Shown piece after piece: positions 6,601 to 64,000 of a DNA stretch of 64,000 nucleotides. The notes beneath the pieces are model-generated. The model was not told where the DNA came from. It worked only from the letters and a program-made list of their open reading frames with translations, and did no database searches. Origin of the DNA: Bugula neritina (Eukaryota > Animalia > Bryozoa); the NCBI GenBank assembly GCA_964035545.1, contig OZ037766.1, forward strand, positions 9,228,722-9,292,721, written 5' to 3'. Position numbers and translations under genes: made by a program. Numbering within the stretch: the stretch's first letter is position 1; every line of letters begins with the position of its first letter.

Positions 6601-8554
6601 ACTTACTCACTCTAACCTAGTTTCTACTTGTAGAATATAAATCTAATTGGGGGAAGGGGTTGACTTTTACAAGTTACAGAAAGCATGATACTGTTCAAGA
6701 TCAACTAGCTACACACTACCTCTGTATTGTGAATTTCTTAAATGTTAAATATGTGGCTGGTTTTACTCAAGATCGCACAGTGATAAACAATGGTAGCTCT
6801 TGACATATGAGACTAGTCAACTACACCAGTTTGTAGAAATTTCCAATCTCAAGGTTGCTGTTTGTTTACTTCAATCTGAAGAGGAAAATAGCCAACAAAA
6901 TCTTGATTATTAGGTAACACTAACTGAATTCCATTTTCATTCTGATTCCAATATGCTAATACTAATACTGAGGCCAGTAAAAATATGAAATTCTAAATGA
7001 ATTTCCAAATGTAGCCGGGCTAACTTAGTTTACACCAAATTACTAACTTCCTTTCTAGGCTAAAACTCAAGGAGATGTTGAAACATGAAACAGTGGAAAC
7101 CGATAGCCACAGCATATCCATAGCACTAACACTGCTGTATACATAAAAAGTTGATGGTAGAATGAAAACTGGAAACAAATTTACCAACACTAGATAAAAG
7201 TGGTCACAAGTGTTAGTCAACGTCTGATGTGATATATAATCTATTGCAGTTTGTGCAGCTGCAAATTCTGCAAGCAACTTCAGGAGCTAAACGCAGGATA
7301 ATTGCAATGTGTATGGTGATTCCACTCTTAATTGACTATTTACCAAAGGTATATGCAAGTCCCTGAAGAGTATATTACCACTAGCTAAGCTCAGTTACTT
7401 ACAAGGCACTACATAAAGGATGGTATAGACCCGAGTAGCCTATACAATCCACCCACTCTCTGCTGGGACCCCTAGTGCTTATATTTCACTTTCCATACAT
7501 GTATTAGCTGACAATATAATATTATTTCATGCCATCACAACGCATGCTTCAGATGGCATGCTTCTAATGGTTTGAGGTCCATTGTTAGTTATGTCCAATA
7601 TCGATCTGTGTGAGTATAAAGCAGGTACCAACTATCATCATGCATAGCAGGTTCTACTGTATACTTTAGTTACTCTATTGTCACGTCAGTATTAAAAATC
7701 AAGTTTGTTGAATAACACTCTGGTTGTCAGGAAAAGAAATATAATGATGAGAAAGTATTGAACTAATTCAAGACAGCTTATTCCTATTCCAATGCCCTTT
7801 TTAGCATGTGAAATCAAAAACTATTGTACTAAATAGAAAAGGATATATAACTGCATTTAAGAATTTTTTTGAGATTTATAAAAATATTATGTGCTTTCAG
7901 CTAAAAGTTAGCTGCTTAAGTACGGGAATGAATGAATCTAAAAGAAGTTTCGTAGAACCAATTGTAGTAGAAAAAGAGGACCATTGAAATTCAACAACCA
8001 ACTGACAACATTTTGAAAACTGAGAAGCCGACATCTTCGAAAACCGACAAATTTAATGGAATTGCAAGACAACTCACAGTGCCTTAAGCAAAGAATTTAA
8101 AAACACAATTCTCAATTTCTGCTGAAATATAATTTAAACTTAATGCTTGACTACAGACTGTAAGGAAACTGCTTACCCTAACAATTTCCAGCATCTCACT
8201 TCGAGAAATGAATCCATTACCATCCAGATCGTACATACTGAATGCCCACTTCAGTTTCTGCTCCAGCTGCCCCCTCGATGTCACACTGAGTGCACAAATG
8301 AACTCTCTGAAATCAATTGTCCCGTCACGATTTGCATCAAACGTGCGAAATACGTGCTCAGCAAACTTTGATGCATCACCATAAGGAAAGAAGTTCCCAT
8401 ATATTTTCTTAAATTCTTCAACAGTCAAGTGTCCTGATGGACAATCTTTAAGGAACCCCTTATACCACTCTGTGATTTCCTCCTCGTTAAAAGAGGTTTG
8501 ATCCTTGAGGTCGCTAATAACTTCTGGTCGCAACTTGCTTGTCCCTTTACCCAT
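3621..8554 (-). CDS. Neurocalcin/hippocalcin-like neuronal calcium sensor (192 aa; coding exons 8554-8177 and 3821-3621)
   Basis: Myristoylation-type start [23 protein letters not shown] motif, EF-hand loops [24 protein letters not shown] and [13 protein letters not shown]-terminal [11 protein letters not shown]. Phase-0 GT-AG intron 8176-3822 joins MLEIVR|AIYKMV. Closest to the NCALD/HPCAL1/Drosophila Nca type. Confidence 0.95.
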
Positions 8555-11239
8555 GTCTGTAACAATCCAATCTTGTAGCACTTATGAAGGATTTCCAAAG
8601 ATACTATAATTTAAAGATACAGCACATTAATAGACTTGGACTCGAGCTCAATTGCCACACTGCGAGTCAATATACAATAAATATATTTATAAATGTATAA
8701 TATTTATATTACAAAAGCATTGCTACCACTCATATTGATTTTACACCAACTTTGCTATATTTATAGAAAAATTTAGGATTTACAATAAGAGACTGCATGT
8801 ATATAAGTAGCAATGACCAGTCTTATCTGAATATATCAAAGATAGCAATTAATGTAATTCTCTATTCACCTACCCAACAAGTGCTGAATACTAAAGTGTA
8901 AATACAGCTACTATGTCAAATAAAGGGACGGTTTGGCCAATCACAACTATTGAGTTATTCATATAGAGCTTACGTCAACATAAAGCAACTAGCAATGAGG
9001 AGATGCATGAATAATTGCCGCTTTTTCTTCAGCATTTGTGTATATAATGCAGTGGATGCAAATAGCAAATAAATATTAATGGGATTACATATCATGAATA
9101 AACATGAGCTACAAGCAAACCTTATGCAAACCGCTGCTAAGTCATTTTTCATAAAAACGATAGGGTTACCATCTCGAACTTGCTGTAGCATGCAGCAGTA
9201 GTAGATTGAGAATGTAATCCAAAAACACAAATTGAATACATGAAACTAAATCCCAGCAGTTTTAATCCAAATTTATTATGGTATTTTGATAAAAACAGCT
9301 TCTGAATTAATTCCAAAGCGCATATATACAAATTTTAAAATAATTAAACTTTTTAGGGGTTCAACTGTGAACATTGAGAAAAGTTGAAAAATTAAAAAAT
9401 AAAAACATCGCATGTCTAATATAAGCCAAAATTTTAGCTACAACAAACTGTTTTTGGAAGTTGTAGCAGAAAATAACAGTACGCTACATGAATGGAGTTA
9501 GTTGTGAAGGCCTGCACGCTGAGTGTATTGATAAATATACATTACTGATTGTACTCAAAGGCCTTATAAAAGATGACATAAATTATTAGAAATTCCTGTA
9601 TATAGGAAATAACTTTTCCAGCATTCTCAAGCAGTAGCTGCATAAATGACTCACTAAATCATTAAATTTCCTACGGTGTTTGGCCAAATGAAAACGGCAC
9701 ATTTTAAACCTTTTTGCTACAAAAAAGTGGTAGCTTATTGTATCTAATAAGTATGAAGATGCACATGATACGATAGTTTTGCCATTTTATAACCTAAAAG
9801 AAATGGATTATTTTAAAAAAAATTGAGAACTTTTTTAACTAGTTTTTCAATCATTTTTTGAAAGGCCACTACGTGAAAACTTAAATAACATAAAACTGTA
9901 GTCAATATTTACCAGAATTATATAATTTAAACTTCGCAAATAAATGTAGAGCAAAGAAGTTGGGCCAAAGTTTAAATTGCTAAGTTTTTACAGCAATGAT
10001 AATATATTTAAATGGTGGAGTTGGAAAAGATGGAAGTCTTAAAACTGAGGGATCATAAAGTTACGTGGTTGCCATTGATTTTACAATAAAAAAGTAATCA
10101 ATCATCATATTGTAAAAGAAAATTGGAAAAGGCGTAGCATCAAGTCTACTAGCTAAGGAAATGACAAACCAAAGCTAATCAGGTAGATTGTTATAAAATT
10201 GCAAAAAAAGGAACAACTATCAACTGCTCTCAGCATAATCATTATAACAAACAGTACTTAAATCATTACTAAATTTAGTAAAATGATAAATAGATTCTAA
10301 AAAGGGTCAAGTCATTAATAGGTAAATTATAAACAATTCAACGCAGAAATAGCTTTGCTGTATTCAACTACAGCCAATAATTTTTTTGCATAATTCTTTT
10401 AACAAGTATAACCACGTGCAATATAAAAACTACTACACCACTATTTTCAAAATGAAACGTAATGAAATTTAGCAAGTGTTGCAGATGAACTACCATTCAG
10501 CTTCAGCTTTAAATAGTCATGGGTTATTGAGAACAGCTAACTGACAGCATATAATAACTGACGGGAAACTGTTTACAAACTGTAAGAATTTTCAATTGAT
10601 GACTAAACTAAGCACAAAAATTAGGCTTTCAACGTTAGGGCGTAGGTTCCTGTGCATACAATTATTGAATTTCCTTTAATGCAAATTATTAAACATTTAG
10701 CTATAAATTCACCAAATGAATATTTAATTGTAAGTCATTTGCCACTTTATTGAGGTGTGCTAAATAAGTTGAATAGCACAAAAATTTCGAGATATCTCAC
10801 TTTGGTACCATCAATTCACAAAGACAAATAAAGAAATTTTCTGTAATGACCAAATTTTTATTTTTGCCAGTCAGTGAACAGACAGGCCGATTTCAGTTTT
10901 AAAGCAGACAGAACAGTGTGAAAATAAGAAACCAGTTAGCAGTAGTTCTGCTCAACTATGTAATCCAACTGTACAGTCACTAAGAACTCAGAAATTCAAC
11001 ACTTTCTGATTTCCTCATAGATGAATATTTCGATGAGGATTCCAGAATAGTTTTGACCTAACCTTGTTACCTAAATTCCTATTTAGCTCTGATTAATTTA
11101 GTCACTCTAATATTGCATTTTACTTGAGATTTTGAAAACAACTTGGTAGTTGACTTTCCTACCTAACTCATGGTGACCTTGATTGCTGTGGTCTAGCATT
11201 TAGCTATAAAAAAAAACTTTTATAGTTTATAGTCCCTGT

Positions 11240-44600: not shown

Positions 44601-47600
44601 GAACCATTGGCAGCACTACCCGCTGCCAACAGGAAAGACCCTCAGTTGGCTCCGCCCACAATAACTGAAGGTGAAGCACGGCATGGAATACTGAGTCTTC
44701 TAGAGCGTGGCTTGATTCCACCTGGTGCGGAGTTGTCATTCCAGCCGTCTCCCGTGAAACATAAGTTGGCTCAGATATATTCCGCTGAAGAGAAGAAACA
44801 GGAAACACTAGTCATTGCTGGTTTGTTGCTAATTAATGAAATTTGTAGCTAATATGTTGAGTTTCAAAATTCTGTATAATATGTGCATAGTTTATGGTTA
44901 TGTTGATAATCAAACTATTTGGTCTATGTGGCATAAATTTATTGTAGTATGTACAATACTTGGACATGTATGTACTATGTATATTATAATGTATGTGTAC
45001 ATTTTATTTATCATACATATGATAGTTATGATAAAGGTACATGTATGTGTGCACACTAGCATATAGGCAATCAACGTGCACCGTTCAACACCACAAATGC
45101 TGTGTGTAATGATTTATGCTATTTAAGTGTTCAGTGACTATTAGCAGGTAGAAAAAACTTTGCTAAAGTTAAACTTACACCTTGTTGATCACCTAGCTGC
45201 TACTAGATACAGGTGTTTGTTAGTTAGCCCCTCTAAGTATCATATCTAGTGACACCCTTCCTTCATGAGCAGCGAGTCATGTGACTGCGCAGGCGTCATG
45301 TGATTGCGCAGTCGTATGCATACATAGATCACATGTTCACAGCATTCGTATGAATATTGACAAATCTTGTAGACGGCACGACATATAACTTAGCTGGTGT
45401 GAAGCTAGATGGCAGTGTGAAGACTAACACACATTCTATTCAGGGCAGCTCAATGCTGGAGTCGGATAAGAACCGCCCCCTTGTCACACCCGTATCTCTC
45501 ACTAAGGATATACAGGCTAAACAGAAGAGCATTCATATGCCCAAGACTAGCGTACCACAAAAAACTCTCGAACTTCAACTTCAACCAGGGGTATGTTTTC
45601 TATTTTATGTGAAATTCTTTTTAAGAATTCTTTTAGGAATCTATTTTTTTAAACTACATATATGCATATAGGCACACTCTTATTCATGTAATATAGTAAT
45701 TACATTACTATAATTATTCACAGTCGAAAAAAACAACGCTGTGTGCTTTTAAACAAATTTGTTTTTTTTTAGGAATAATATCTGTAAGAGTAAAAATTCA
45801 CAAGATTATAAATTTGAAATAGTCTTTTCAACATAAATTTTATATTGTTCACCCCACTACTTTCCCTATATAAGCGATGCCCAAAAAATAAATGCCAAAC
45901 AATTGGTCATGAAATTTACTCGTTATAACTTATAGCAGGTGGAATATACAGAAAGTGATGCACCATTGCTGCCTGCTATTAATAATGCAGCAGGTTTACT
46001 AATGCTTCAGTTCTTTAACAAGGTATCAGACTATACGTTGGTCACTTTATAGTCATCAATAGAATCTCTCTGCACTAAAGCACTATGGAGCACTTTGCAC
46101 TGCAGAAAACTTGGTTGATTTCTTTTATTCTTTAGTATTTTATGATTTGTGTTTTTATGTGGCAAACTATGCACGCTGTTATATATGATGATCATATGGC
46201 AGTTCTAACCTGCATGAATATAGAGACAATCTCAGTCTAATCTCCAGACCCTTCAAACAACCTTGCTGTTCACCTTTGCTCAATGCTTGTTACTGAGCCT
46301 TTACTTGTACTTGTGTGCATACAAGCTATATATGGACTGCATGAACTCTTTAACATGGATGTATTAATATCACTTCTGACTGTTTTTATTGCAAAATAGA
46401 TTCTACAAATGTAAATACTCTTTCATCTTGTTTTGAAATCACAATCTAAATAGTCATTACGTTATTGTCAATCTCATGATCTTTCAGTTACCAATAAATG
46501 CAGACATTTGAATACAGACTTACAAAATTCACAAGTGGTCAATATAGTGTAGTAAACTGTGGGTTCTGAATGCAACTAGTGCCTACATGCTCTAGAAAGA
46601 ATAAGCCAAGTATTTGAGTACAAATGAGGATAACCTTTATTGTATCAGATACAGCTCATGTGGTCCTACTACCAGCGAGCTCCAGTAGTAGTCTGAAGCT
46701 ACACTGGAAACTCGCCTGCTTTTATACACAAGAATTCACATCTAGAATGTTCCAACAGACAAAAGAAAGTTAAGCTTGACAGTAACAAAAGAAAAATAGA
46801 CAAAGGAGAATGAATAATTCAATAGGCCAAGAATTTAGCTATAATAACAACCTATTGAAGGCATTCATAAAAGCTACACAAATTTCCAGTATCAGTATTA
46901 ATGCAAAACGATGAAATAGCAAAAGGGAAAATAACTCTGGAAATGCGTATTTAATGAAAATTACATTATACTGAAAGCTTAATCACAATAATAAGGCATT
47001 AGAAAGCTAGTGCAACTTAGCTACAATTACAGCATTCAAAATATACGCAACAGTAATTATAATACTGACACACGCAGTTACTTGAGAACAGTAGAGGATG
47101 AGAATCTATCACATTCTCCCCCCATCGAAAAGCATCCCTTTTCGATAACAAAACAATGATTCCACACAAAAAAAATGAAACACAAACGTAGAAAAATATG
47201 CGGTTAACAGGAAGGTATTATGATTAATCACACGTAACACGAGAACATTTACAGCTCAGTTGGCTATTGCCAGCGGCCCCTGGTTGTCCGGTTTTATCAT
47301 TAGAGGTGGTGCACCAGGCTTTCTATCTCTTCTGTACTTGGATCGAGGATATGGGACCAGGCCTCGATTGCGCTATCCAGGACGCACTCTCGGTAAGGAA
47401 GTGCCATACTCTGCCCGTGACGGGGCAATTGTGGGTGGGTTGGCTGAGTCTGTTCTTCTATCTGGTTGCCTGGTGCTCCAGATATCCAATACTGGCGGGC
47501 GACCAGGGCCCGAGGCATTGCCAGTATTGGAGAGTCCTCTTCGTCTCTGCCTGCGAGGTGGTCGCCGTATAGAGTGCCCTGCTCCTCCCCAGCTATGAGC

Positions 47601-50600
47601 TGGAGCTCAACCGGTTCGGGGTCAGGGCCACTAACGCTGGCGGAACACACCTCGGAAGAGGGGGTGTCGTACTGCTGGCTGCGGGGAGCCGAAACAGGAG
47701 CTGGTGGGGGAGGGGAGTCGGATCGACTGGCCTCCTCGGTATCCTTACGCTCCTCTGTTTGGGTATCTGGCGAGGTAACTCCCATAGCTGATGCTAGTGT
47801 CTGAATAACAGTGTTTAAATTATACTTAGGGGTATCAGGATTAGAATTCAACTTGAGCTGTAACTCACGTGCTAGCTGTGTGAAATCTTCTTCTTGGTGG
47901 AATTCTCCAGGGTGATGGAGGGAATTTCCAGTCAAGATGGGGTGGTCGTCCGTACTGGGTGGGTTGTCTTCATGAGGGGGCCACTCCAGGTGCCCTACAG
48001 CATAGTCTGCCAGATACCTGGGGGGTCTTCTTGACCGCTGGCTCCTCTCAATTGGAACAGGCACCTGTGGTGTTGGTGGCTCCTGGGCTACCCTAGTAGG
48101 GGGGTCCCCGCCTTCACCCAACACGGGGGTGGGGGTGTCCTCCCCCAGGGAGGGTGGTGGTCCTAGGGCTTCCCGCTGTTCCTGTTCCCGCTCTTCTCTC
48201 TGCTGTCGCTCCAGCTGCTCTATCAAGGCGGCCTGCTCCTGGTCCGACTCTCTGGGAACCACAATTTCCACCTCTCGGGGCTGGGTGGCCCGTCCTCGAC
48301 GGTTGGGCTGGCGGTGGGGCTCCAGGAGGGGTGGAGCCTCACCCACTGCGTCTGGGCTGGCATGGTAAGGCTTCAGGCGCTGCTCGCTCTGGACCGAGAC
48401 CTGTCCAGAGCGCTCCACACGGTATGTGTGGTTGGGCAGCACCTCCACTACACAGTAGGGACCGACGAACTTGGGCTGAAGTTTAGCCGACTGTCCGCGT
48501 CGCCTACGGTAGCTCACCATCCAGACCCAGTCTCCCACTTGGTACAACGGGGGCTCTTCCGAGTCCTCTGTGCGGGTCTGCCACTGCTGGGTACGCAGTG
48601 CATCATGAGCTTTGCCCATGATGTCTATCAGACCCTCCACATATTCGTGTACCGGTGACTCGGGGGCAGGAACATGGTATGTCAGGTGTTCCGGAACCCG
48701 CGTCTCTCGGCCTAGCATCAGGAAGTTTGGGGTCTCCTGCGTGGCGGAGTGTGGTGTGCTGCGGTAAGCCCGCATGATTTGCGGCAGCACCACGTCCCAT
48801 TCTTCCTGACCTCGACCAAGGAGCAGGCTCCTGAGGGCGTCACCCAACATCCTGTTGTTCCGCTCGACGACTCCGTTCCCTTGCGGGTGATATGGGGTGG
48901 TCCGACTCTGGTTCACCCCCCATATCCGGCAGAGGTCTCCCATGAGCTGGGACTGGAACTGGGCACCCTGGTCCGTATGTATCTGCTCGGGTAAACCGAG
49001 GTAACAGAACACATGTTGGTCCAGGGTCCGGGCCACCGTGGGGGCTGTTGCGTCTGGAATAGCCAGAGCATCTGCCCACCGGGTAAAGTGGTCCGTGAGC
49101 ACCAGTATCCAGGTGTTCCCTCTGGCGGATAACGGCATAGGCCCGACGAGGTCTACCGCCACTACTTGCCACGGTCGACCAGCGTATAGCCGGCGTCGAC
49201 CAGTGGTTTCCGTGGGGCGGCCATGCTTGCTAGCTTGGCAGACCTCGCATTGCCGTACCCGCAGTCGTACGTCCCGAGTCATTCCGGGCCAATACCAACG
49301 CAGCCGCAGACACCTGATGACCCGACTGACTCCAGAATGAGCCTGCTTATGGGTGTCCCAGATCAGTTCCCGTCGGAGGGCGCGTGGACAGACGACGCGG
49401 TCCCTCTCTTGCTGACGGTTGTCTGCTGCTAACGTTATCATCAGGAGGCCATCAGGACTGACCTTGAGGGCATCCCAGCGACGACAGAGGAGTTGGAACT
49501 CAACGTCTCCCTGCCGCTGCTGTTCCTCGCTAGGTCGTCGGCCCTCCTTCTTGGCCCGGAAAATGTCCGCTACCGCGCCGGGTAGCGTCTCCTGGAGTCG
49601 GCACAGCTCCTTGACATTCTGGTACAGAGTGGGGTTGGCGTGGAGCGCCTGGACGTCGTCTGAGTGGGTTTCGGTCCGAAGATGGCCGTGCTCCCACCGA
49701 TAGACGGCGCCCTCCCCTAACTCTGTTTCCACGTCAAGGCGAGCGGGTCCCCCGTCCCGCTTCTCAATGTGCAGGCACTGCTTACAGTCTCCTACCGGCC
49801 GGCGGCTCATGCCGTCAGCGTTCCCGTGCTTCCGGCCAGCACGGTGTTCTATCCGGTAAGAGAACTCGGCAAGAATCTCTAGCCAACGAGCCACCTGGCT
49901 CGAGGGCTCTGCACGTTTACACAGCCATATCAGTGATGCATGGTCTGTTCGCAAACGGAACGTTCTCCCATACAGATATGGCCGAAAGTGCTTGACCGCC
50001 TTGACTACTGCTAGGAGTTCCTTCCTAGTGGTGCAGTAGTTCTTCTCGGCGGCCGCGAGAGTCTTGCTGTAGTAAGCTACGACCACCTCACTTCCACCCT
50101 GAACTTGAGACAGGACAGCTCCCACGCTGTGGTCGCTGGCGTCAGTGTCCAGGATGTACTCTTGGGCTGGGTCAGGATACGCCAGAATTGGCGCCTCCAT
50201 TAGCCGCTGCTTGAGGTGGTCAAATGCCTGCTGCTCCTCCTGTGTCCACTGCCACCGGACCCCCTTTGCAGTCAGCCGATTTAACGGCTGAGCCACTCCT
50301 GCGAAGCCAGGTATGTACTGCCGGTAGTACCCTACTAGGCCCAGGAACGCGCGCAACTCAGGGAGGTCACGGGGGACAGTCCACTCCTTCACAGCCTGTA
50401 CCTTCTCCGGGTCGGTAGCGACCCCGTCACGGCCAACCACATGGCCAAGGTACGTGACTTCCGGCTGCAGGAGTGCACACTTGGAGGGCTTTAGCTTCAG
50501 TCCAGCTGCCCGGAGACGGTCAAAGACCTCCCGCAGACGACTGACATGGGTCGAGAAGTCTGGGGAGATGACAATGACGTCGTCCAGATAGATGAGGAGG

Positions 50601-53600
50601 GTCTTCCAGTGTAACCCACTGAGGACCTGCTCCATGAGCCGTTGGAAAGTTGCCGGGGCGGACGTTAATCCAAATGGCAGTACTTTCCACTTCCAGAGCC
50701 CGTCGCGGGTGATGAATGCTGCTTTATCCTGGGCATCAGGACTGAGGGGTACTTGCCAGTACCCGCTAAGCAGATCCAAAGTACTGAAGTACTTGCTACC
50801 CGCGAGGGCATCTAGAGACTCATCTATCCGTGGGAGAGGGTAGGCGTCCTGGATGGTAACACTGTTGAGTCTGCGGTAGTCCACGCAGAATCTCCAGCTA
50901 CCATCCTTCTTCTTGACCAGGACTACTGGAGAGCTCCACGCATCGTGGGCAGGCTCAATCAGATCCCGGTCGAGAAGATCCTGTACCTGTCGGCTCACCT
51001 CCTTCTCCTTCTCCGGGCCTAGACGCCGGGTAGGCTGCCTGATGGGAGTGGTGCCGGCTGCCAGGGGTATCTCGTGGGAGATGACCTTGGTCAGCCCCAT
51101 GTCTCCATCGCCACGACTGAAGACATCACTGTACTCCGCAAGTAGTTGAGCCAGTACTTGGCGTTCAGTACTACTTGTACAGTTTCCACACGCTCCATCA
51201 TATAGGTCAGCCATATGCTCTGGGACTGCTCCTCGTCTGGTGTGAGGGGGGTTCCCCTGGGTGTCGGCCACTGTCTCCAGTGCCGGACCCACATCCGCTT
51301 CCTGGATGGAGTGGTACTTCCCCACCAGCGCTCCAGCCGATAATCGGACAGGTTCCGTGAAGGGGTTGATGCACTGCACGAGGAGCTCCTGCCGACAATC
51401 TAGCCGATTCAGGCTGTTTGCTAGTCGGATCGCTCCGTGCGTTCCCTCAACCACCCCCAGGCCGGCGATCCCCTTGCAGTTGACTCTGCAGCGAAGAGTC
51501 GCCTGGGATCTCCCCGGAACCGTGCAGTCCCGCACTACCTGGACTCCGCCCACCAAGGGCCTTCCGAACTTGTCGACGCAGACAAGCTCCTTCCCAGCCA
51601 TCACCACCACTGACTTCTGGAAATCCATGTGACACTGGTGTTTCTCCAGAAACGGCATTCCCAGGATGGCGTCCTCCTTCAGCTGGCTGACTATGAACGT
51701 CTCGTGAATTGCTTGATCACGGACGCGTCCAGGTAGTGAAATGACGCCGTAGAAAGGAATGCATGATCCGTCCGCCAACGTACCATGCGCACCTTCATAC
51801 GGCTCGAGGCTCGCCCGCTCTCGTGCACCAAGAGTGTCAAAGAGACGCCTACTCAGCAGGTTGGTAGTGCACCCAGTATCCAGTAGGAATGTGGCAGCTT
51901 TACCCGAAATCTTTCCGGGCAGGAAGTAGCTGCTTCCATACGGCTGGGTGCTCCTGGAGCGGTCAGTCTCTGGGGGAGACACAACTTGGGTCCGCACAGC
52001 GGGCCTCCTCTTCGTCTTAGAGACAACGGGGGTTTTCTGAGGTCGGGAGGGTAGCTTGGGGTACTCTTGCGAGTAAGCTGAAACCTCCTCCACAACCTCC
52101 TCGGGCAACCCCGCGAACCGGTTCTGGAGTGGCCAGGCCGGAGGATCGGGCAGACCTTGCGGTCTCCGAGATCTCCGAGGTGCCTGCCATCCTGCTTCTT
52201 CTAGCTGCATCCGGGTCTCGAGTGACACGGCCGGAGGATCGGGTAGACCTTGCGGTCTCCGAGGTCTCCGTGGCCTCTGCCACTCGGTATCGGCAGACCC
52301 TGTGGAGGTCTCTTCTTCTCCTCTTCGAGTCCTATCCCGGATGGGATTGGCGTGAGGCCCACGGTTGGCGGAAGTTACCGTGAGCCTTGGGTGTTTAAAG
52401 GCCCTTGGCCTCTAGGGCAGTGCCTCCTCACGTGCCCTTGCGCCCCGCACCCCCAACAGGTTAGCAGAGATGGGCGGACAGGGTTGTCCCGTGAACGGGG
52501 AGCCCGCCTATCCGCCTGTTCGTTCTGCAACTTCGTCACCGTAGCCTGCAGGCCTTTCATCATGTCCATTAACATGGTGAGCTGCGTCTGCTCGGGTGAT
52601 TTAGTTGCAGCTGCTGCTACCTGTGGAGTTGGAAGTGGGGTGGTCTCCTCATGCTCCTCGACCACTTGGCGGGCTGTATAGCTCGGTCGCCTAGGCTCTT
52701 CCACCTGGAAGTAAGCCTTCCCCATTTCCAGCGCTTCCTCTATACTGTTGACCTTGGCGGCCAGCCAGTGTCGCTGCAGGTCCGGGTGATTCACGCTCCG
52801 GAAGAACGCGTTATAAACGAGGCGCTTTCGGTCGTCGCCAGTGGCATGACCGAAAGCAGCCTGAGCCAGGCGCTCTACCTCGTTAGCGTGATCTTCCAGA
52901 GGAGTCTTCCGGTCTCTCCTCATTATCTGCAAACGATCAGCTGCTTCTTCGGCTGATAGGCCGAACCGGGCTCTGAGAGCCCGCATGATGTGCTCTTCAT
53001 CAGGCCCAAGAGCAAAGCTCTTGGCCCGGCCTGTCAGACAGGCCCGGAGTTGGAGGATGCGCACCCGTACTGGCCATTCAGCGATGGTGGCCACATCCTG
53101 GAACTCCCTGATAAATTGCTCTACGTCTCCTTCTCCTCCGAAATTCGGGGGCTGGAGGCGATACCTGTCACCAGGTGATGCCTGTCCTTGACCCCGCAAT
53201 CCCTGGAGGGCTGTGACCAGCGCCTCAACCGTGAGGGCTGGTGGTGTTGCTGCCTCAGGGGCTGAGTCCCCTGGGGCCATTGCGCGCCGCTCGGCAACTA
53301 GTTATTCGAAAATCCCACCGCTGCCACCAATGTAGTAAACTGTGGGTTCTGAATGCAACTAGTGCCTACATGCTCTAGAAAGAATAAGCCAAGTATTTGA
53401 GTACAAATGAGGATAACCTTTATTGTATCAGATACAGCTCATGTGGTCCTACTACCAGCGAGCTCCAGTAGTAGTCTGAAGCTACACTGGAAACTCGCCT
53501 GCTTTTATACACAAGAATTCACATCTAGAATGTTCCAACAGACAAAAGAAAGTTAAGCTTGACAGTAACAAAAGAAAAATAGACAAAGGAGAATGAATAA

Positions 53601-56600: not shown

Positions 56601-59600
56601 TTCTCAACGTTCCGATTCTTGGCCCAGAACCAGATGTTGCTCATCTATACTCATCTAAGTCAGGCTCTAAGCGCATATTTCAAAGGTGAGCGTTGGCCGT
56701 ATAACATGCTATGCACAGCATGAAGTTGGAAATAAAGTTAGTTGCGTTTCTTACAGTTTGAATTGCTTCACAACTCATTTCATTATTGGGGAGTTTTAAA
56801 AAAAGCCACAGCAGCACACAGTTTACTCTCAACAGTTTTTGTTTCATCAAATTGGGTTTTTAACATCAATTTTAGGAATTGGTTACACAGGCTAATTTGG
56901 CCATAGAAAACAACATAATTTTCATACCACCAGTATTTACTATTTAGGTCGCAGCCTTTAACCAGAATGAAATTTTTTTCCATTCTTGTAATAATTCATT
57001 ATATTTTATGATTTTAGTGCTAACATAAAGATTCCACCCGGTGAATTTGATATTTACACTTTTCCGCAGCTGCATGATTCACTAGCACAACTAATTACTG
57101 ATAACCTGGATGTAAGAACCTGGCTATTCAAGATGGATCATGAGTTTGATGGTAGGTTGAGGAGTTTCAACAAACGTTCATCTATACTTTATTGGATAAA
57201 GAGAATTCAGTTTAGTGTCGAGGGGAGGGTGGGGTGGGTGATTAACACTTGAAATCTAAATCAAGATTTTACAACCACACTATTTCAACATTGCTAGTTG
57301 GTGTCTAGATTGATTGAGATATAATGTAGCTATTGCTGGGTTAGTAGTTTGTAAACTGTTGAAGTTCACTGATATTATAAACAATTTTTATTATATTTGA
57401 AAACAAATAAAATGTTTTATGATATATAATATATATCATAAAGCTATACATATTATGTGTAGCTTTATCGATCATAACAAATGTTGCATTGATGATTCAA
57501 ATAGTGACATTTTGCACAGATTTCAGTGTTGACAGATATTGTACAGTCTAGCTGTATACCTTCAGGTAGAGGTACAGCTTACTGCCATATTGCCGACCAC
57601 TTAAGGTGCTACATGTGGGCCAGGAAGGAGTGTGAGAGATATGGTGATAAATGGTCCAAGAAGTGGGCTCAAGAACCAGTTTTCAACAAGATACACAGCG
57701 AACTACCTCACATATTGGAGAACCACTGTGAAACGGTCCACAAGAATGTCTACAGTACATGGCAGCAATTTCTAGCAGCTTTTCTTTCTAGAGGTGAGTG
57801 GTTTGGCTGCCTGAAATTTTGTTTAAAGGTTACTTGCTGTAAAATATGTTGAGTAGTGATAATTTGAAACTAATATACGCTACTTATTTATTACTTGAAA
57901 AAATAGTATTATTGAAAATAATCCTTCAGCAATTAAGTAAAGCATCATCTTTTATATCAATTTTCATAGTAACTGATATTATTGGTGTTCTGTAGTTTTG
58001 ATTTATATATAGGCCTAATATATTCAACTTGTTAGATTGTTTTAGCACCACTTATTATATTGCTAAAATATAATTATTACTACTTACTTTTGTATGTTGT
58101 ATTAGGCGGAGTTGTAGAGGCCACTCCCCCTAGTGACTCAGTCACTTGTTTAGCAGTGAACATGCTAATAGAGCCGGATGGCCAAATAAGCATTGTGTCT
58201 TCTGGAGATCAAATACACGCTGAAAGTCCATACAGGTGATTATTTACCGTACAATATGACTTGATGAACTGCGCGATATGACTTGATGTACTGTACGATA
58301 TGACTTGATGTACTGTACGATATGACTTGATGTTCTGTACAATATAACTTGATGTACTGTACAATATGACTTGATGTACTGTACGATATGACTTGATGTA
58401 CTGTACGATATGACTTGATGTACTGTACAATATGACTTGATGTACTGTACGATATGACTTGATGTACCGTACAATATAACTTGATGTACTGTACGATATG
58501 ACTTGATGTACTGTACGATATGACTTGATGTACTCTACAACATGACTTGATGTACTGTACAACATAACTTGATGTACTGTACAATATAACTTGATGTACT
58601 CTACAACATGACTGTGCTATTAGGTGCTGGGGTCTCTCAACTCCTCAATGTTCCGTGGAGCCCGAAGATCTCAACAAATCCTGTAAACTGATAGCTAATG
58701 CTTGCAAAGCCAGAGGAATTGTGGGATACTTTGCTATTGACTTTGTCACTTATATAGACGCTAGAACGGTGAGTTTTATAAATTGCTTAATAATTTCGTC
58801 ACTTTTCAACAGGACTTTAATGCTAATTTATTGTTTCAACGTGGTAATCTAGGTTTTAAAATACAGTTGCTTAGTATCAGGTCGATAAAACTTTTATTTT
58901 TTCATATTTTAATTTTTAACTTTTTTCATTAGTTAAAATTTGCAATTTGAGTTAAAGCTGTATAACATTGATTAGGTTGAAACAAAAAATTAGCAAGTAT
59001 CTGAATAGTACGGAGTTCAAAACAGAACTGACTTACACATGATTTCATTGAATATAAATGTTACCTAGTTTGAAGTAATTGGTAACACCGACTTTGGTTA
59101 TGAAACGGGGAGTCAAACGTATTTGATAACTATAAGTTTCGAGCAGCATGTGTGGAAAGTTGTGTGTCCCTGCCTTGGTTAATTGAAAAATGTTTACTGC
59201 ATTCTTATAGGATTACTCATGACTTGCAACCCATGATTTTAGGTTAGTTAGGGATTAGTCATAAGTGAAAGAAAGATTATATGCTTACAAAATATTTAAA
59301 TAAGAATTTTCAAACTATTAGAAAAAAATTGTTGCCTCAAAATGACAAATGATAATATATCTGAGTGGGCAATACAAAGCAGGCGCTATTCAAGATTAAT
59401 ATACCAGCACGCTATTTTATTTAGGGCAATCAAGAGTGTTGGGCAGTGGACCTGAATCTCCACTATGATGACAGCATAGCCATGAACTGTTTAGTAAACT
59501 TTATGACCAACGGTGTGTTCAACGCCAATGACCATGTTTTCAACATCACACCTCCCATACAAGAGAGTAGGCGACAACGGAGAAGGCGTCATCAATCAGC

Positions 59601-61024: not shown

Positions 61025-63992
61025 TCAAGCTGTTGTGTAACTGTTGATTGAATCACGTCTTACAGGTTGATTCTCTAGCTTGTCGACTGCATCTGCTTGA
61101 TGATATGTTACCTGAATAACAAAATGGCGATATAAGCAAACTAGCGGTGATATAACTAATATTTAAATCATTTAAACAAAATGGCATCATTTTTGTAGTT
61201 TTACTAGAATATATAAAATGTATTAAATATAGGTCTTACATTTCTTTTCTTCAGCACAACCATTGCTGTTATCAAGATCCCAAACATCATAGAGACCATA
61301 ACTCCAACTAACACAAACAGGCCAGCAGTACTAGGAGTGCTATATGCATTCTACAAAAAGAAATGCAGGAAAGCATATAGTTTTTGATATAGAGTAGAAA
61401 CCTGCAATGCATAATGTCCAATTATTACAACAAAAATGTTTTCAAAATAAAGTAGAACAAAGTGTAATTGCTTTCTTTAAAAATCAGAGCAAGACTATTG
61501 ACACACTTTTTGGATTACAATATCAAGTGGCTACCGGCAAGTGAGTAAAAGTTGTAATAACCACCAGATTTCATTTCTACTCACCACATCTTTAGTAGCA
61601 GATAAGCTCAATTTCTTATTATGAGCTTGAATAATACTTTTAAGTTTCTCATGAGCTTGACTATTGACACTGGGTACATCTCTTTTGCTTCTTGCCGCAC
61701 TGTCCTGTGTGCCAGTATCCAGCATGCACTGTTTACACGTAATAGGGCAGATCTCCAAGATACCAGGTACACTGCAGAGGTTAGGTTCGCACAGGGGGTC
61801 TTCCCCAGGAATATCAGAACAAGGTGAACAATCTGCCTTCACTTCTAATACCAGTCTAAAATGTAAGTAATCAAAGTGAATTCCTAGATATGAATTGCTT
61901 TTCGATACCTGAAAAGTAAAATATGTTGGCAGTACATAAAAATGAGTTGCTTAGTTATATAGACACAAAATATTGAGCAACTATGCAAATTTTTTGGATT
62001 CTTCCCACAATGCTTAGACTCAAACAAAGCAGCTTATCTGTTTTTCTGACTGAGCTAAGAAACAGCGTATCATTTCAGTATTTATCTGCTTATTCAGTAA
62101 CTAATGAAATAAAGCAAATTCCTCAGCTGCAAAAAATCTACTGCAGCAAATAATTAATTACAAAAATTATCTGAGGTGAAGTAATCTAGTAATTGCTTTG
62201 TATTTTCACGGCCTAGCAAAACCAAAAATCATAATATATTAACCAACTCCTATGTAAACATTGCTGAATGTTATCGAAAAGCTATTTTATAAACTGAGAG
62301 AAAAACAGAATACTTTGCTGTAAAGACTCACATAGTCTTAGGCTCTGGGCGCACGCCAAGCTCCTTAATAACTTTGCTAGTTCCATCTTTTCTATCGATG
62401 AACACATCAAATCTAATCTCGTCAACATATCCAACAGGATTGGAACGGCCAGGATCAGCATCAAATACAGTGACAAATATACTGAAATTCTAAAAACACA
62501 AACAATAACAAATAGTATTATTTGTTCGTTTTATGAGACAAACGCCCAAGTGTCTATAATATAAGTAAACCAGTTGAAGGAGCAAAAAACATTAACATTT
62601 TTCATGTAGCTTTTCACTGTTCTATTTGGTAGGTAGATGTAATATTTCACAGATAATTCAACTCATTCTCACAGATTACATGAAAGCTACATAATTAGTT
62701 AGCAGTTAGCATCCTCACCGCCCAGTCATAGCCAGAAAGTCGAGCAACAAACGGATTTTCCCAGCCGGAGACATTCAGAGTTGCGAAATCAATCTCAGTT
62801 GACTCAGCCATTACTGGAGTGAAGAAGTTGTAATAGGAGCAGTCCCTAAAGCAAATAGCAATTCATAGTAAACAGTCACTGCTATGCATAAAGCTACAAG
62901 TATTTCACTGTGTTGTCTGCATGGTACAAAGAACAGTCCTTGGCCCACCTGAAACCCTTGTCATGGGGGAAGGAGGGGGGGGGTGGTGGGTTTTCATAGG
63001 GGTGTAGACTTGAAACAAAAGCTATTATTTTTTACAGTTAAATATTTACCTGCCATAATGTTTAATTTAACTACTAGCCCATAAATTTAGCACTAAGAAT
63101 AGCAAAATTAGAAAAAAATATGTCTTAATTTATCCAAACATCTTAAATGGCTAATTTATTCAAACAATTAACAAACATATATTTTAATTACTTTTGTAAG
63201 CTGCTCAAAGGTCCAATACATATATCAAATTGAATGTCACACATATCATCTGGGTTTTGAGATTGAATGGAATCACATGGACGTCCGATGGCTGTGATAT
63301 CATCTGGGTTAGTGAAGTTTATAAAGGTAACTTCAAGGTTAGTAAGCATGGTGTCTGTGCAAGGTTTCTCTGTAGTGGTGGTAGGTGTGGTGGTTGTAGG
63401 CGTTGTGGTAGTTGTTGGTGTAGTCGTTGTGGTTGTAGTTGGTGTTGTGGTAGTGGTTGTTGTAGTACTAGGAGTGCTATATGCATTCTACAAAAAGAAA
63501 TGCAGGAAAGCATATAGTTTTTGATATAGAGTTGAAACCTGCAATGCATAATGTCCAATTATTACAACAAAAATGTTTTCAAAATAAAGTAGAACAAAGT
63601 GTAATTGCTTTCTTTACAAATCAGAGCAAGACTATCGACACACTTTTTGGATTACAATATCATGTGGCTACCGGCAAGTGAGTAAAAGTTGTAATAACCA
63701 CCAGATTTCATTTCTACTCACCACATCTTTAGTAGCAGATAAGCTCAATTTCTTATTATGAGCTTGAATAATACTTTTAAGTTTCTCATGAGCTTGACTA
63801 TTGACACTGGGTACATCTCTTTTGCTTCTTGCCGCACTGTCCTGTGAGCCAGTATCCAGCATGCACTGTTTACACGTAATGGGGCAGACCTCCAAGACAC
63901 CAGGTACACTGCAGAGGTTAGGTTCACACAGGGGGTCTTCCCCAGGAATATCAGAACAAGGTGAACAATCTGCCTTCACTTCCAACACCAGT
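61025..63992 (-). CDS. 3' part of a type I membrane protein: ShKT-RSKR-Thr-rich-C2/MNNL-like-ShKT-RSKR-TM-short tail; exons 63992-63722, 63487-63192, 62845-62719, 62489-62332, 61855-61585, 61350-61240, 61111-61025; 5' end beyond the window
   Basis: All seven exons join in frame through GT-AG introns. ShKT-type CSD...C..LC.....CPITCKQC twice, poly-Thr/Pro stalk, MNNL-like Cys/aromatic pattern, TM segment GLFVLVGVMVSMMFGILITAMVVL followed by KKR, and a tail ending YTTA*. Confidence 0.8.
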
Positions 63993-64000
63993 CTAAAATG
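61327..64000. repeat. Intragenic tandem duplication, period 2137 bp (61327-61863 vs 63464-64000)
   Basis: The two 537-bp segments, exon and intron included, differ at only ~11 positions by manual comparison. Confidence 0.95.

Follow-up and report, generated by a model that had tools for sequence, protein, structure and literature searches.

Extending the analysis past position 64000 of the window (a 64,000-nucleotide stretch of Bugula neritina DNA) places its minus-strand segment 63992-61025 at the 3' end of one predicted 46.8-kb gene (G000:C2:9289746-9336501, minus strand), of which it is predicted to hold the last two repeats, the membrane anchor and the tail. The extension, which had been proposed when the segment was read from sequence only, located an ATG 43.8 kb past the window's end, a 19-residue signal peptide and, directly after it, the first of 17 C2 modules, together with three DSLs, six short ShK-like knots and long mucin linkers. 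We consider it probable that this gene encodes a giant type I membrane mucin that would be shed and would carry many metal-dependent binding domains. A part of a signalling protein, the C2 (MNNL) domain of Notch ligands, seems to serve here in a second role, as a structural unit of a surface coat.

The window portion consists of seven predicted exons with canonical AG/GT borders and compatible phases (Table 1). On the minus strand they read in order as a six-Cys knot with RSKR, a Thr/Pro linker with a three-exon domain, a second knot with RSKR, a transmembrane (TM) segment, and a short tail ending in YTTA, a possible class I PDZ ligand according to the sequence-only reading. The peptide strings given in the sequence-only reading were matched exon by exon, and its single-pass membrane protein with Thr/Pro mucin tracts agrees with the TM segment, tail and linkers read here. 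The acceptor AG of exon 63722..63992 lies at 63994-63993, and the remainder of module 16 is outside the window. Exon 63192..63487 encodes the N-P, the CD...CD and, in the 'ICIG' strand, the C; its GT donor is in phase 2. Between modules of the whole predicted gene, the Thr/Pro tracts are 30 to about 390 residues long and presumably O-glycosylated. From signal peptide to tail, the predicted protein would comprise 17 C2 domains, each encoded over three exons, with linkers, DSLs and knots, then RSKR, TM segment and tail. Its length, very roughly 4,500-5,000 residues, is an estimate from unassembled exons, and every search reported here used single exons or unaltered database proteins.

Table 1. 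Features of the 3' end of the predicted gene, with positions counted along the window.
Feature	Position	Strand	Basis
Exon: last strand of C2 module 16 (LVLEVKADC), ShK-like 6-Cys knot, RSKR, 32-residue spacer	63722..63992	-	direct reading
Short ShK-like 6-Cys knot, first window copy	63958-63863	-	
RSKR, first window copy	about 63829-63818	-	
Exon: ~38-residue Thr/Pro mucin linker and first third of C2 module 17	63192..63487	-	direct reading
Exon: middle third of C2 module 17 (DC-SY...T-V...F...NP...W)	62719..62845	-	direct reading
Exon: last third of C2 module 17 (V-x-V-F-D-x-D ... V-D-E-x-x-F-D ... G-x-R-x-x-P-K)	62332..62489	-	direct reading
Exon: last strand of C2 module 17, ShK-like knot, RSKR, juxtamembrane spacer	61585..61855	-	direct reading
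ShK-like knot, second window copy	61821-61726	-	
RSKR, second window copy	about 61692-61681	-	
Exon: NAYSTPST, 25-residue hydrophobic transmembrane segment, KKRN stop-transfer	61240..61350	-	direct reading
Last coding exon: 28-residue cytoplasmic tail, end S-Y-T-T-A	61025..61111	-	direct reading
Stop TGA	61027-61025	-	direct reading
AATAAA, candidate polyadenylation-type signal, ~45 nt 3' of the stop codon	60975..60980	-	direct reading

The same three exon types are repeated 17 times over the 46.8 kb, with splice positions and phases conserved and no internal stop. Such recurrence of an exon triplet with kept splice positions is far beyond chance. The modules are 25-45% identical to each other and are therefore old and maintained. 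A decaying or mis-assembled repeat array, either a pseudogene or a tandem-repeat assembly artefact, might be suspected from the near-identity of the last two units and from the public DNA contigs, which are interrupted within the array. Nevertheless, about 55 exons are free of internal stops and keep their splice sites and phases, most of the window part reappears in an independent DNA run, differing by ordinary polymorphism, and the architecture is common to a paralogue at C2:4.22-4.25 Mb (an 11-fold C2 array with one EGF-like unit near the TM segment) and a relative from another sample (P0029). We regard decay or mis-assembly as exceedingly improbable.

The proposal that the repeat is a Notch-ligand-type C2 (MNNL) domain is supported, for the whole ~190-residue unit, by sequence comparison, in which the exon classes map in order on MNNL-positive domains. 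With hhalign, the first-exon class aligned to columns 4-51 of these domains (E 2.2e-13), and the middle and third classes to columns 57-90 (E 2.5e-5) and 97-122 (E 3.9e-6) of an MNNL-type alignment. Profile A8, in which 37 of the 46 rows are exons of the predicted gene, matched the Jagged-1 C2 domain in the PDB with E 9.5e-9 over residues 2-160, which is the whole domain, as well as DLL4 (7.7e-8) and fly Delta (1.1e-7). Taken together, the hhalign and A8 results extend the homology to bona fide MNNL members over the whole domain in the same order. Exon profiles also aligned in order to the Delta exon of the same genome (hhalign, E 6e-4 and 3.5e-5), the class of the middle-third exon 62719..62845 giving the latter value.

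Pfam scores of single exons have to be read as scores of domain thirds. On this scale MNNL was matched by four of 16 first-type exons (best E 0.042), and it was the sole match of the trimmed exon 63192..63487, at 12.3 bits and E 0.12 against a cut-off of 22.5 with one third of the domain scored. Untrimmed whole exons gave nothing useful in Pfam because the Thr tract masks the domain; trimming helped. The predicted gene was missed by a genome-wide MNNL scan, and PDB searches with the second- or third-exon profile alone returned chance matches only. A first-exon profile search of 1.8 billion proteins recovered MNNL/DSL proteins, including a 'Delta-like' protein of the anemone Actinia tenebrosa (XP_031571273.1; E 3.9e-9, three matched stretches), and relatives at E<=1e-5 numbered only eight among 5.8 billion proteins. 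An AF2 model of residues 238-385 of the anemone protein, computed with exons of the predicted gene in the alignment, had eight strands and middling confidence (pLDDT 67) and resembled the C2 domain of Jagged2 (Z 9.6), Serrate (9.2), Delta (9.0) and also the tardigrade protein AMNP (8.7; 8.7-9.3 when the related Ramazzottius 'C2 domain protein' is included), with generic C2 domains nearly as high (Z 7-8.4). No whole module within one exon was found in the relatives or the paralogue; the fused exon pairs in the relative's contig L018 and in the paralogue were different ones. The Delta intron that follows 'FAWP' is no more than one codon away from the intron between second and third exons, but its phase differs and we did not count it as evidence.

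The knots were initially taken for ShKT domains. Two lie in the window and four upstream inside mucin linkers, and all six keep the same cysteine spacing, with six Cys and a terminal C-x3-C-x2-C. The ShK-like spacing of that assignment held, and the match to the family profile did not: the best copy in the predicted gene reached 12.8 bits against Pfam ShKT (PF01549; E 0.18, cut-off 20.9), and the two window copies gave nothing at E<=10. Against 10 genuine ShKT domains of the same genome the knots aligned in the last 11 columns only, with 63% probability (hhalign), and a PDB profile search with the knot alignment returned no ShK. A model of the knot of exon 61585..61855 (pLDDT 83) had as its best and sole near PDB match a minimal ShK homologue, 5wcv (TM 0.66/0.70, rmsd 1.9 A), at a Foldseek E of 3.3, which is not significant. 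As judged from these comparisons, the case for ShKT family membership is weak.

It was also suggested that every module ends in an RxKR site and that cleavage releases soluble C2-ShKT units, perhaps lipid-targeted toxin or defence peptides. The two perfect R-S-K-R motifs after the two window knots, the ShK cysteine spacing and the likeness of the knot model to a minimal ShK homologue fit this suggestion, and the weak ShKT membership does not. Moreover, exons 63722..63992 and 61585..61855 are 97% identical and belong to a 2.1-kb tandem duplicate with 96-98% identity, introns included, whose junction is marked by a copy of the first 8 codons of TM exon 61240..61350 at the 63487 start of the linker exon. 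The two copies in the window thus reflect a very recent duplication of the last unit (C2-knot-RSKR). RSKR occurs only adjoining the membrane end, in two of 17 modules, and none of the four upstream knots has flanking dibasic sites. The expected products of cleavage are a single C2-knot unit and a mucin of roughly 4,000 residues rather than a string of peptides. A peptide precursor is therefore very unlikely, and the claim of a site in each module does not hold. Since the two RSKR motifs stem from one recent duplication, the ancestral state is a single juxtamembrane site, and the paralogue has RVKR at the corresponding place before its TM segment. A single ancestral site favours ectodomain shedding over peptide release; the ectodomain would be released by a furin-type convertase acting on the juxtamembrane RSKR.

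The window contains neither DSL nor EGF, as the sequence-only reading had said; that reading would have given way to an ordinary Delta paralogue had upstream repeats of this kind made the protein one. DSLs do lie upstream: one after module 2 scores 29.4 bits (Pfam cut-off 24.2), a DSL-like unit after module 1 scores 19.6 bits, under the cut-off, and another after module 6 is recognized by pattern only. In the minus-strand open frames inspected, which comprised segments of at least 40-45 residues for most of the gene and, in its middle third, only the Cys-rich or Thr/Pro-rich ones, nothing EGF-like was apparent; Thr/Pro tracts occupy the position of the EGF stalk. The canonical layout of one C2 followed by a DSL is replaced by 17 C2 domains with a DSL following just modules 1, 2 and 6. 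With 17 C2 domains and the EGF-like pattern unseen, this is not an ordinary Delta paralogue. The upstream DSLs, as far as sequence can tell, show descent from a Delta-like gene. Such a ligand gene would have become a giant mucin as its C2(-DSL) unit was repeatedly duplicated internally and its EGF stalk was lost.

The retained DSLs raise the question of whether the C2-DSL units of modules 1, 2 and 6 still bind Notch, so that the protein would be a non-canonical ligand or modulator whose mucin body presents or masks them, e.g., in cis-inhibition or in long-range presentation after shedding. Its N-terminus has the ligand layout (signal peptide, C2, DSL), one DSL exceeds the Pfam cut-off, and, like Delta, the protein would cross the membrane once and have a short tail. 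However, a DSL is missing after 14 of the 17 C2 domains, two DSLs out of three score under the cut-off or are degenerate, EGF/DOS repeats were unseen in the open-frame, Cys-rich or Thr/Pro-rich stretches inspected, module 1 has lost its acidic cluster, and the genome keeps a normal Delta (MNNL E 1.8e-29 in the genome-wide scan). We think a role in Notch signalling unlikely.

The acidic cluster is what suggests metal binding. Of 16 modules, 14 keep the first and 13 the second CD motif of the first exon, and 13 of 15 keep DxD/E in the third exon; the modules without CD...CD (3 and 10) are the same two without DxD. Each residue of the CD...CD pairs with its counterpart in AMNP C91-D92/C97-D98 (7dbt), residues that bind Mn/Zn (PMC9145152), and the module DxD would correspond to AMNP D161/D163. 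Most modules thus carry the AMNP-type motif, CD...CD with a later-loop acidic pair, and by homology with Jagged-1 C2 and AMNP the beta-sandwich tip is predicted, in most of them, to hold a divalent metal ion. On a mucin stalk the array would form a multivalent metal-dependent binder, most likely Ca2+-dependent in sea water, with lipids, glycans or surfaces as candidate ligands; the mucin may form a protective or adhesive surface coat.

A different use of the same site would be an extracellular antioxidant coat, in which the modules are AMNP-like Mn-dependent peroxidases arrayed on the mucin. AMNP was the only PDB match of the first-exon profile, exact at the metal-binding CD-CD motif (E 0.86), and was matched at 1.4e-5 by the profile of the relatives. 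The four acidic positions co-vary across modules, and AMNP activity requires these metal-site Asp residues (PMC9145152). Yet the full-length profile is nearer to Notch ligands (1e-8) than to AMNP (beyond 0.01), a single study stands behind the AMNP activity, Ca2+ greatly exceeds Mn2+ in abundance outside marine cells, and catalytic residues beyond the metal ligands are undefined. We know of no MNNL-type domain for which peroxidase activity has been shown. An antioxidant function is in our view decidedly unlikely, and metal-dependent binding remains the preferred reading.

Recognition of the C2 domain in Notch ligands dates only from 2013. To our knowledge, the metal-binding C2 (MNNL) domain has so far been known mainly from the tip of Notch ligands, and has been discussed almost entirely as the lipid- and receptor-binding tip of Delta and Jagged. 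Seventeen copies on a mucin stalk, mostly DSL-free and with EGF unseen, suggest an independent working life for the domain. The array offers many natural variants of one putative metal site, among them modules 3 and 10 as natural 'knock-outs', and a giant shed surface mucin would be a candidate for the mucus, adhesion or microbe handling of this fouling bryozoan.

Only tentatively, C2/MNNL may not be specific to Notch ligands and may be one branch of a wider extracellular metal-binding family that animals have reused outside signalling. Proposed members are the 17-fold mucin array, the 11-fold paralogue, a protein in which an MNNL-type domain is fused to a fibrinogen domain (P0044) and the tardigrade stress protein AMNP. 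If so, the bryozoan mucin could be a multivalent metal-dependent barrier, lipid- or microbe-binding or antioxidant, and a natural system for a C2 role before, or beside, Notch signalling. AMNP was published as a tardigrade-only family without known relatives; a link by sequence and fold would supply the evolutionary origin of this supposedly orphan stress protein and suggest a shared metal chemistry. A literature search with incomplete coverage found MNNL joined with mucins, or AMNP with Notch ligands, nowhere, which is weak evidence of novelty.

Among known systems, the MNNL domains of Delta, Serrate and Jagged (PF07657; PDB 4cbz, 5mw5, 4xl1, 7alk) resemble the bryozoan modules over the domain, beginning at the first strand and ending at the Cys that precedes the DSL, and share the Cys framework and acidic positions (the second CD; WD..D); a DSL follows the C2 likewise in three bryozoan modules. 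The bryozoan gene differs in having 17 C2 copies rather than one, most of them without a DSL, in having Thr/Pro mucin linkers and small knots in place of the EGF stalk, in a single Cys then Asp (CD) where many Notch ligands have CC, and in single exons that stay under the Pfam MNNL cut-off. The Actinia tenebrosa protein also has tandem C2-DSL units in one predicted protein. At 566 residues, with one or more DSLs behind each of its three C2 domains, it is far shorter than the bryozoan array, and mucin linkers, ShK-like knots and TM segment are all absent from its model. Tardigrade AMNP/g12777 and the Ramazzottius 'C2 domain protein' (7dbt/7dbu, 7df2; PMC9145152) are beta-sandwiches of the secreted pathway with a metal site made of a disulfide-linked CD...CD and two Asp on a later loop. 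The CD...CD alignment is exact, whereas the sequence similarity is local and weak (direct, or through relatives), and AMNP is a small single-domain Golgi protein, unlike the array. With the ShKT domain (ShK toxin; AsK132958, PDB 5wcv) the knots share six Cys, CP..CG.C and the C-x3-C-x2-C end, and ShK itself has a similar C-x7-10-C-x4-C spacing; the conserved Asp/Trp core of ShKT is absent from the knots.

The overall layout is that of membrane-tethered mucins such as MUC1, MUC4 and MUC16, in which globular modules are interspersed in a very large Thr/Pro-rich ectodomain, and a proteolytic site next to the membrane precedes one TM segment and a short tail. The predicted protein has the Pro/Thr/Ser tracts, signal peptide, TM segment and juxtamembrane RSKR of a membrane mucin. 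This likeness is one of layout: the globular modules are C2/MNNL in the bryozoan and SEA, NIDO, AMOP or vWD in MUC-type mucins, and the putative cleavage site is a convertase motif in the former, whereas the latter undergo SEA autoproteolysis.

The 3' end of this gene was read from the sequence as seven minus-strand exons within window 63992-61025, bordered by AG/GT throughout and compatible in phase (see table). Their single-exon translations give the peptide strings of the sequence-only reading, whose exon observation is thus borne out. In all searches the queries were single exons or unaltered database proteins. The window corresponds to G000:C2:9228722-9292721. When 60 kb past the window's end was added and its open frames were searched with the three exon peptides, the exon triplet encoding one domain was found in 17 copies reaching 43.6 kb past that end, so the gene is far larger than the window shows. 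It starts with an ATG and a 19-residue signal peptide, followed by an intron and then directly by module 1. Thr/Pro tracts, 30 to about 390 residues long, separate the modules, and four more six-cysteine knots lie between modules upstream. A dead gene is an unlikely alternative; splice positions and phases are conserved through all 17 triplets, and no exon contains a stop.

Coordinates of the exons and of other elements in and next to the window
Feature	Position	Strand	Borders or place
Domain's last strand, six-cysteine knot, R-S-K-R, 32-residue spacer	63992-63722	minus	AG/GT, phase compatible
Thr/Pro tract, then domain's first third	63487-63192	minus	AG/GT, phase compatible
Domain's middle third	62845-62719	minus	AG/GT, phase compatible
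Domain's last third	62489-62332	minus	AG/GT, phase compatible
Second knot, RSKR, spacer	61855-61585	minus	AG/GT, phase compatible
Transmembrane segment, then KKRN	61350-61240	minus	AG/GT, phase compatible
Tail ending in S-Y-T-T-A, then stop	61111-61025	minus	AG/GT, phase compatible
AATAAA	60980-60975	minus	3' of stop
Minisatellite	58209-58584	minus	
Minisatellite	L009:5594-7202		4.9-6.5 kb beyond window's end
Ty3/gypsy-type retroelement	47300-53280	minus	
EF-hand protein exon	8084-8581	minus	

Other elements were also observed. Two long tandem minisatellites are open in all three frames, with units such as HYSTLHCTTL and another of 21 letters; the one beyond the window fills the gene's intron before module 15. 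The retroelement is GC-rich within an AT-rich region and has an uninterrupted pol-like frame of 1642 residues with visible protease, RT, RNase H and integrase motifs, together with a gag-like frame of 301 residues carrying a zinc knuckle. The EF-hand exon is of the neuronal-calcium-sensor type, with EF-hand loops and an internal myristoylation-type MGK start.

Direct Pfam scans of single exons fell under the cut-off. The sole match of the window's first exon, with its Thr tract trimmed, was MNNL (E 0.12), which was also the only family recurring among 16 first exons. A profile of these 16, run against 1.8 billion proteins, gave 85 matches at E<=1e-3, mostly exon-sized fragments; the full-length ones were proteins called MNNL and/or DSL by Pfam, namely a 'Delta-like' protein of a sea anemone carrying C2-DSL units in tandem, one protein arranged as MNNL-DSL-MNNL, another combining two MNNL domains with a fibrinogen domain, a ligand of C2-DSL-EGF-TM layout and a mollusc 'delta-like protein' of 182 residues. 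In profile-profile comparison the three exon classes map in order along MNNL-type domains, to columns 4-51 (E 2.2e-13), 57-90 (E 2.5e-5) and 97-122 (E 3.9e-6), and the first and middle classes also align, in order, to the Delta exon of the B. neritina genome itself. A further profile, with exons of this gene in 37 of its 46 rows, matched, in the PDB, the Jagged-1 C2 (9.5e-9) over the stretch that begins with the first strand and ends at the Cys preceding the DSL, as well as DLL4 (7.7e-8) and fly Delta (1.1e-7). An AlphaFold model of the corresponding anemone domain (Actinia tenebrosa XP_031571273.1, residues 238-385), built on the same alignment, has eight strands at pLDDT 67; among its best structural matches were Jagged2 (Z 9.6), 7df2, a tardigrade 'C2 domain protein' (9.3), Serrate (9.2) and Delta (9.0), followed by DLL4 (8.8) and the tardigrade peroxidase AMNP (8.7), with generic C2 domains at Z 7-8.4.

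DSL domains follow three modules: module 2 (Pfam 29.4 bits, cut-off 24.2), module 1 (19.6 bits) and module 6, which fits the pattern C..FYYG..C...C. Given the profile and structural matches and these DSLs in the same gene, the C2/MNNL call made from sequence was right, and it is sound to read the repeated unit as a Notch-ligand-type C2/MNNL domain, whose fold would be that of the anemone model. An ordinary Delta paralogue had been envisaged should DSL or EGF repeats lie upstream: the DSLs are there, and those open-frame listings that were inspected by eye showed nothing EGF-like. A less likely alternative is that the N-terminal C2-DSL units, those of modules 1, 2 and 6, modulate Notch.

The first-exon profile alone had a single PDB match, the Mn-dependent peroxidase AMNP (7dbt, E 0.86). 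In this alignment the two invariant Cys-Asp pairs of the modules fall on C91-D92 and C97-D98, which in the AMNP crystal form a disulfide-linked, metal-binding 'CD-CD motif' acting together with D161 and D163 (PMC9145152). The third exon carries D-x-D at the position of W-D-S-S-N-D in Jagged-1. The first pair is present in 14 of 16 modules, the second in 13 of 16 and DxD/E in 13 of 15; modules 3 and 10 lack both the pairs and the DxD, the joint loss expected if the four acidic residues form one site. We infer a divalent-metal site at the sandwich tip in about 13 of the 17 modules. The published account of AMNP/g12777 describes a family restricted to tardigrades and without known relatives. Its structure (7dbt/7dbu) is matched at E 1.4e-5 by a profile built from MNNL-type C2 domains of other phyla, which share its CD...CD metal motif; AMNP may represent a divergent C2 domain of the Notch-ligand type, a link for which an incomplete literature search found no published statement. 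An AMNP-like antioxidant role is a less likely rival to the binding function favoured below.

The knots share the pattern C-x7-10-C-x4-C-x7-8-C-P-x2-C-x2-C in all six copies, a spacing close to that of ShK toxin itself. Pfam ShK reached E 0.18 at best, in one copy, and in an hhalign comparison with ten genuine ShKT domains from the same genome only the final C-x3-C-x2-C stretch aligned. The model of the window knot (pLDDT 83) had one close PDB match, the minimal sea-anemone ShK homologue 5wcv (TM 0.66/0.70, rmsd 1.9 A over 29 columns; E 3.3, non-significant). The ShK domains first proposed are fairly described as ShK-like, their family membership being weak. The genome holds at least 70 Pfam ShK matches, with dense clusters of genuine ShKT-domain exons at G000:C2:7.00-7.08 Mb, C4:5.31 Mb and C9:4.08 Mb.

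The same contig carries, at a distance of 5 Mb, a paralogous gene of about 11 modules (C2:4223517-4249400, plus strand, loci L019-L022). It has the same Thr/Pro linkers and ShK-like knots, one of which reaches Pfam ShK together with its neighbours, one EGF-like unit, and, before its TM, R-V-K-R in the matching juxtamembrane position. Some of its exons are fused, with last third, linker, knot and first third in one, and middle and last third in another.

According to the sequence-only reading, each module ends in R-x-K-R and could be cut there to release C2-ShKT units that might be toxin-like. This peptide-precursor model draws on the two RSKR-bearing units of the window, yet these are the only R-x-[KR]-R sites in the gene's coding parts and form a tandem duplicate with a period of 2,137 bp, which leaves the proposal unsupported. 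Identity between the units is 97-98.7% in introns and 93.7-97.4% in exons, and a copy of the TM exon's first eight codons (NAYSTPST) ahead of the module 17 Thr tract marks the junction. The duplication is recent, and before it one knot-RSKR-spacer unit adjoined the membrane. Conservation of a single juxtamembrane convertase motif in both gene and paralogue suggests that the entire ectodomain is shed, and not C2-knot peptides. When window 61585-63721 was compared with the other copy, which covers window 63722-64000 and about 1.6 kb past the end, exons differed at 29 of 844 and introns at 22 of 1038 aligned bases; this slight exon excess is too small for a selection call.

Most likely the product is a mucin that is anchored in the membrane and shed from it, with Notch-ligand-type C2 domains as its globular beads and a predicted metal site in most of them. 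Internal duplication within a Delta-like gene that also lost its EGF stalk would account for its origin. The favoured function would be a multivalent, metal-dependent binding coat, Ca2+ being the obvious ion for a protein in sea water; lipid, glycan or microbial surfaces would be its obvious targets, judging from the analogy with ligand C2 domains. Elsewhere, P0044 (665 aa, from a JGI/IMG contig of 2.4 kb) has two MNNL-type C2 domains (Pfam 7e-12) followed by a fibrinogen C-terminal domain (7e-56), another use of the MNNL-type domain outside Notch ligands. An incomplete literature search found nothing linking MNNL to mucins, which is weak evidence of novelty, and no account of a mucin made of C2/MNNL domains. 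Tandem C2-DSL proteins already exist as uncharacterised predictions, and the architecture is best seen as a variant on known kinds.
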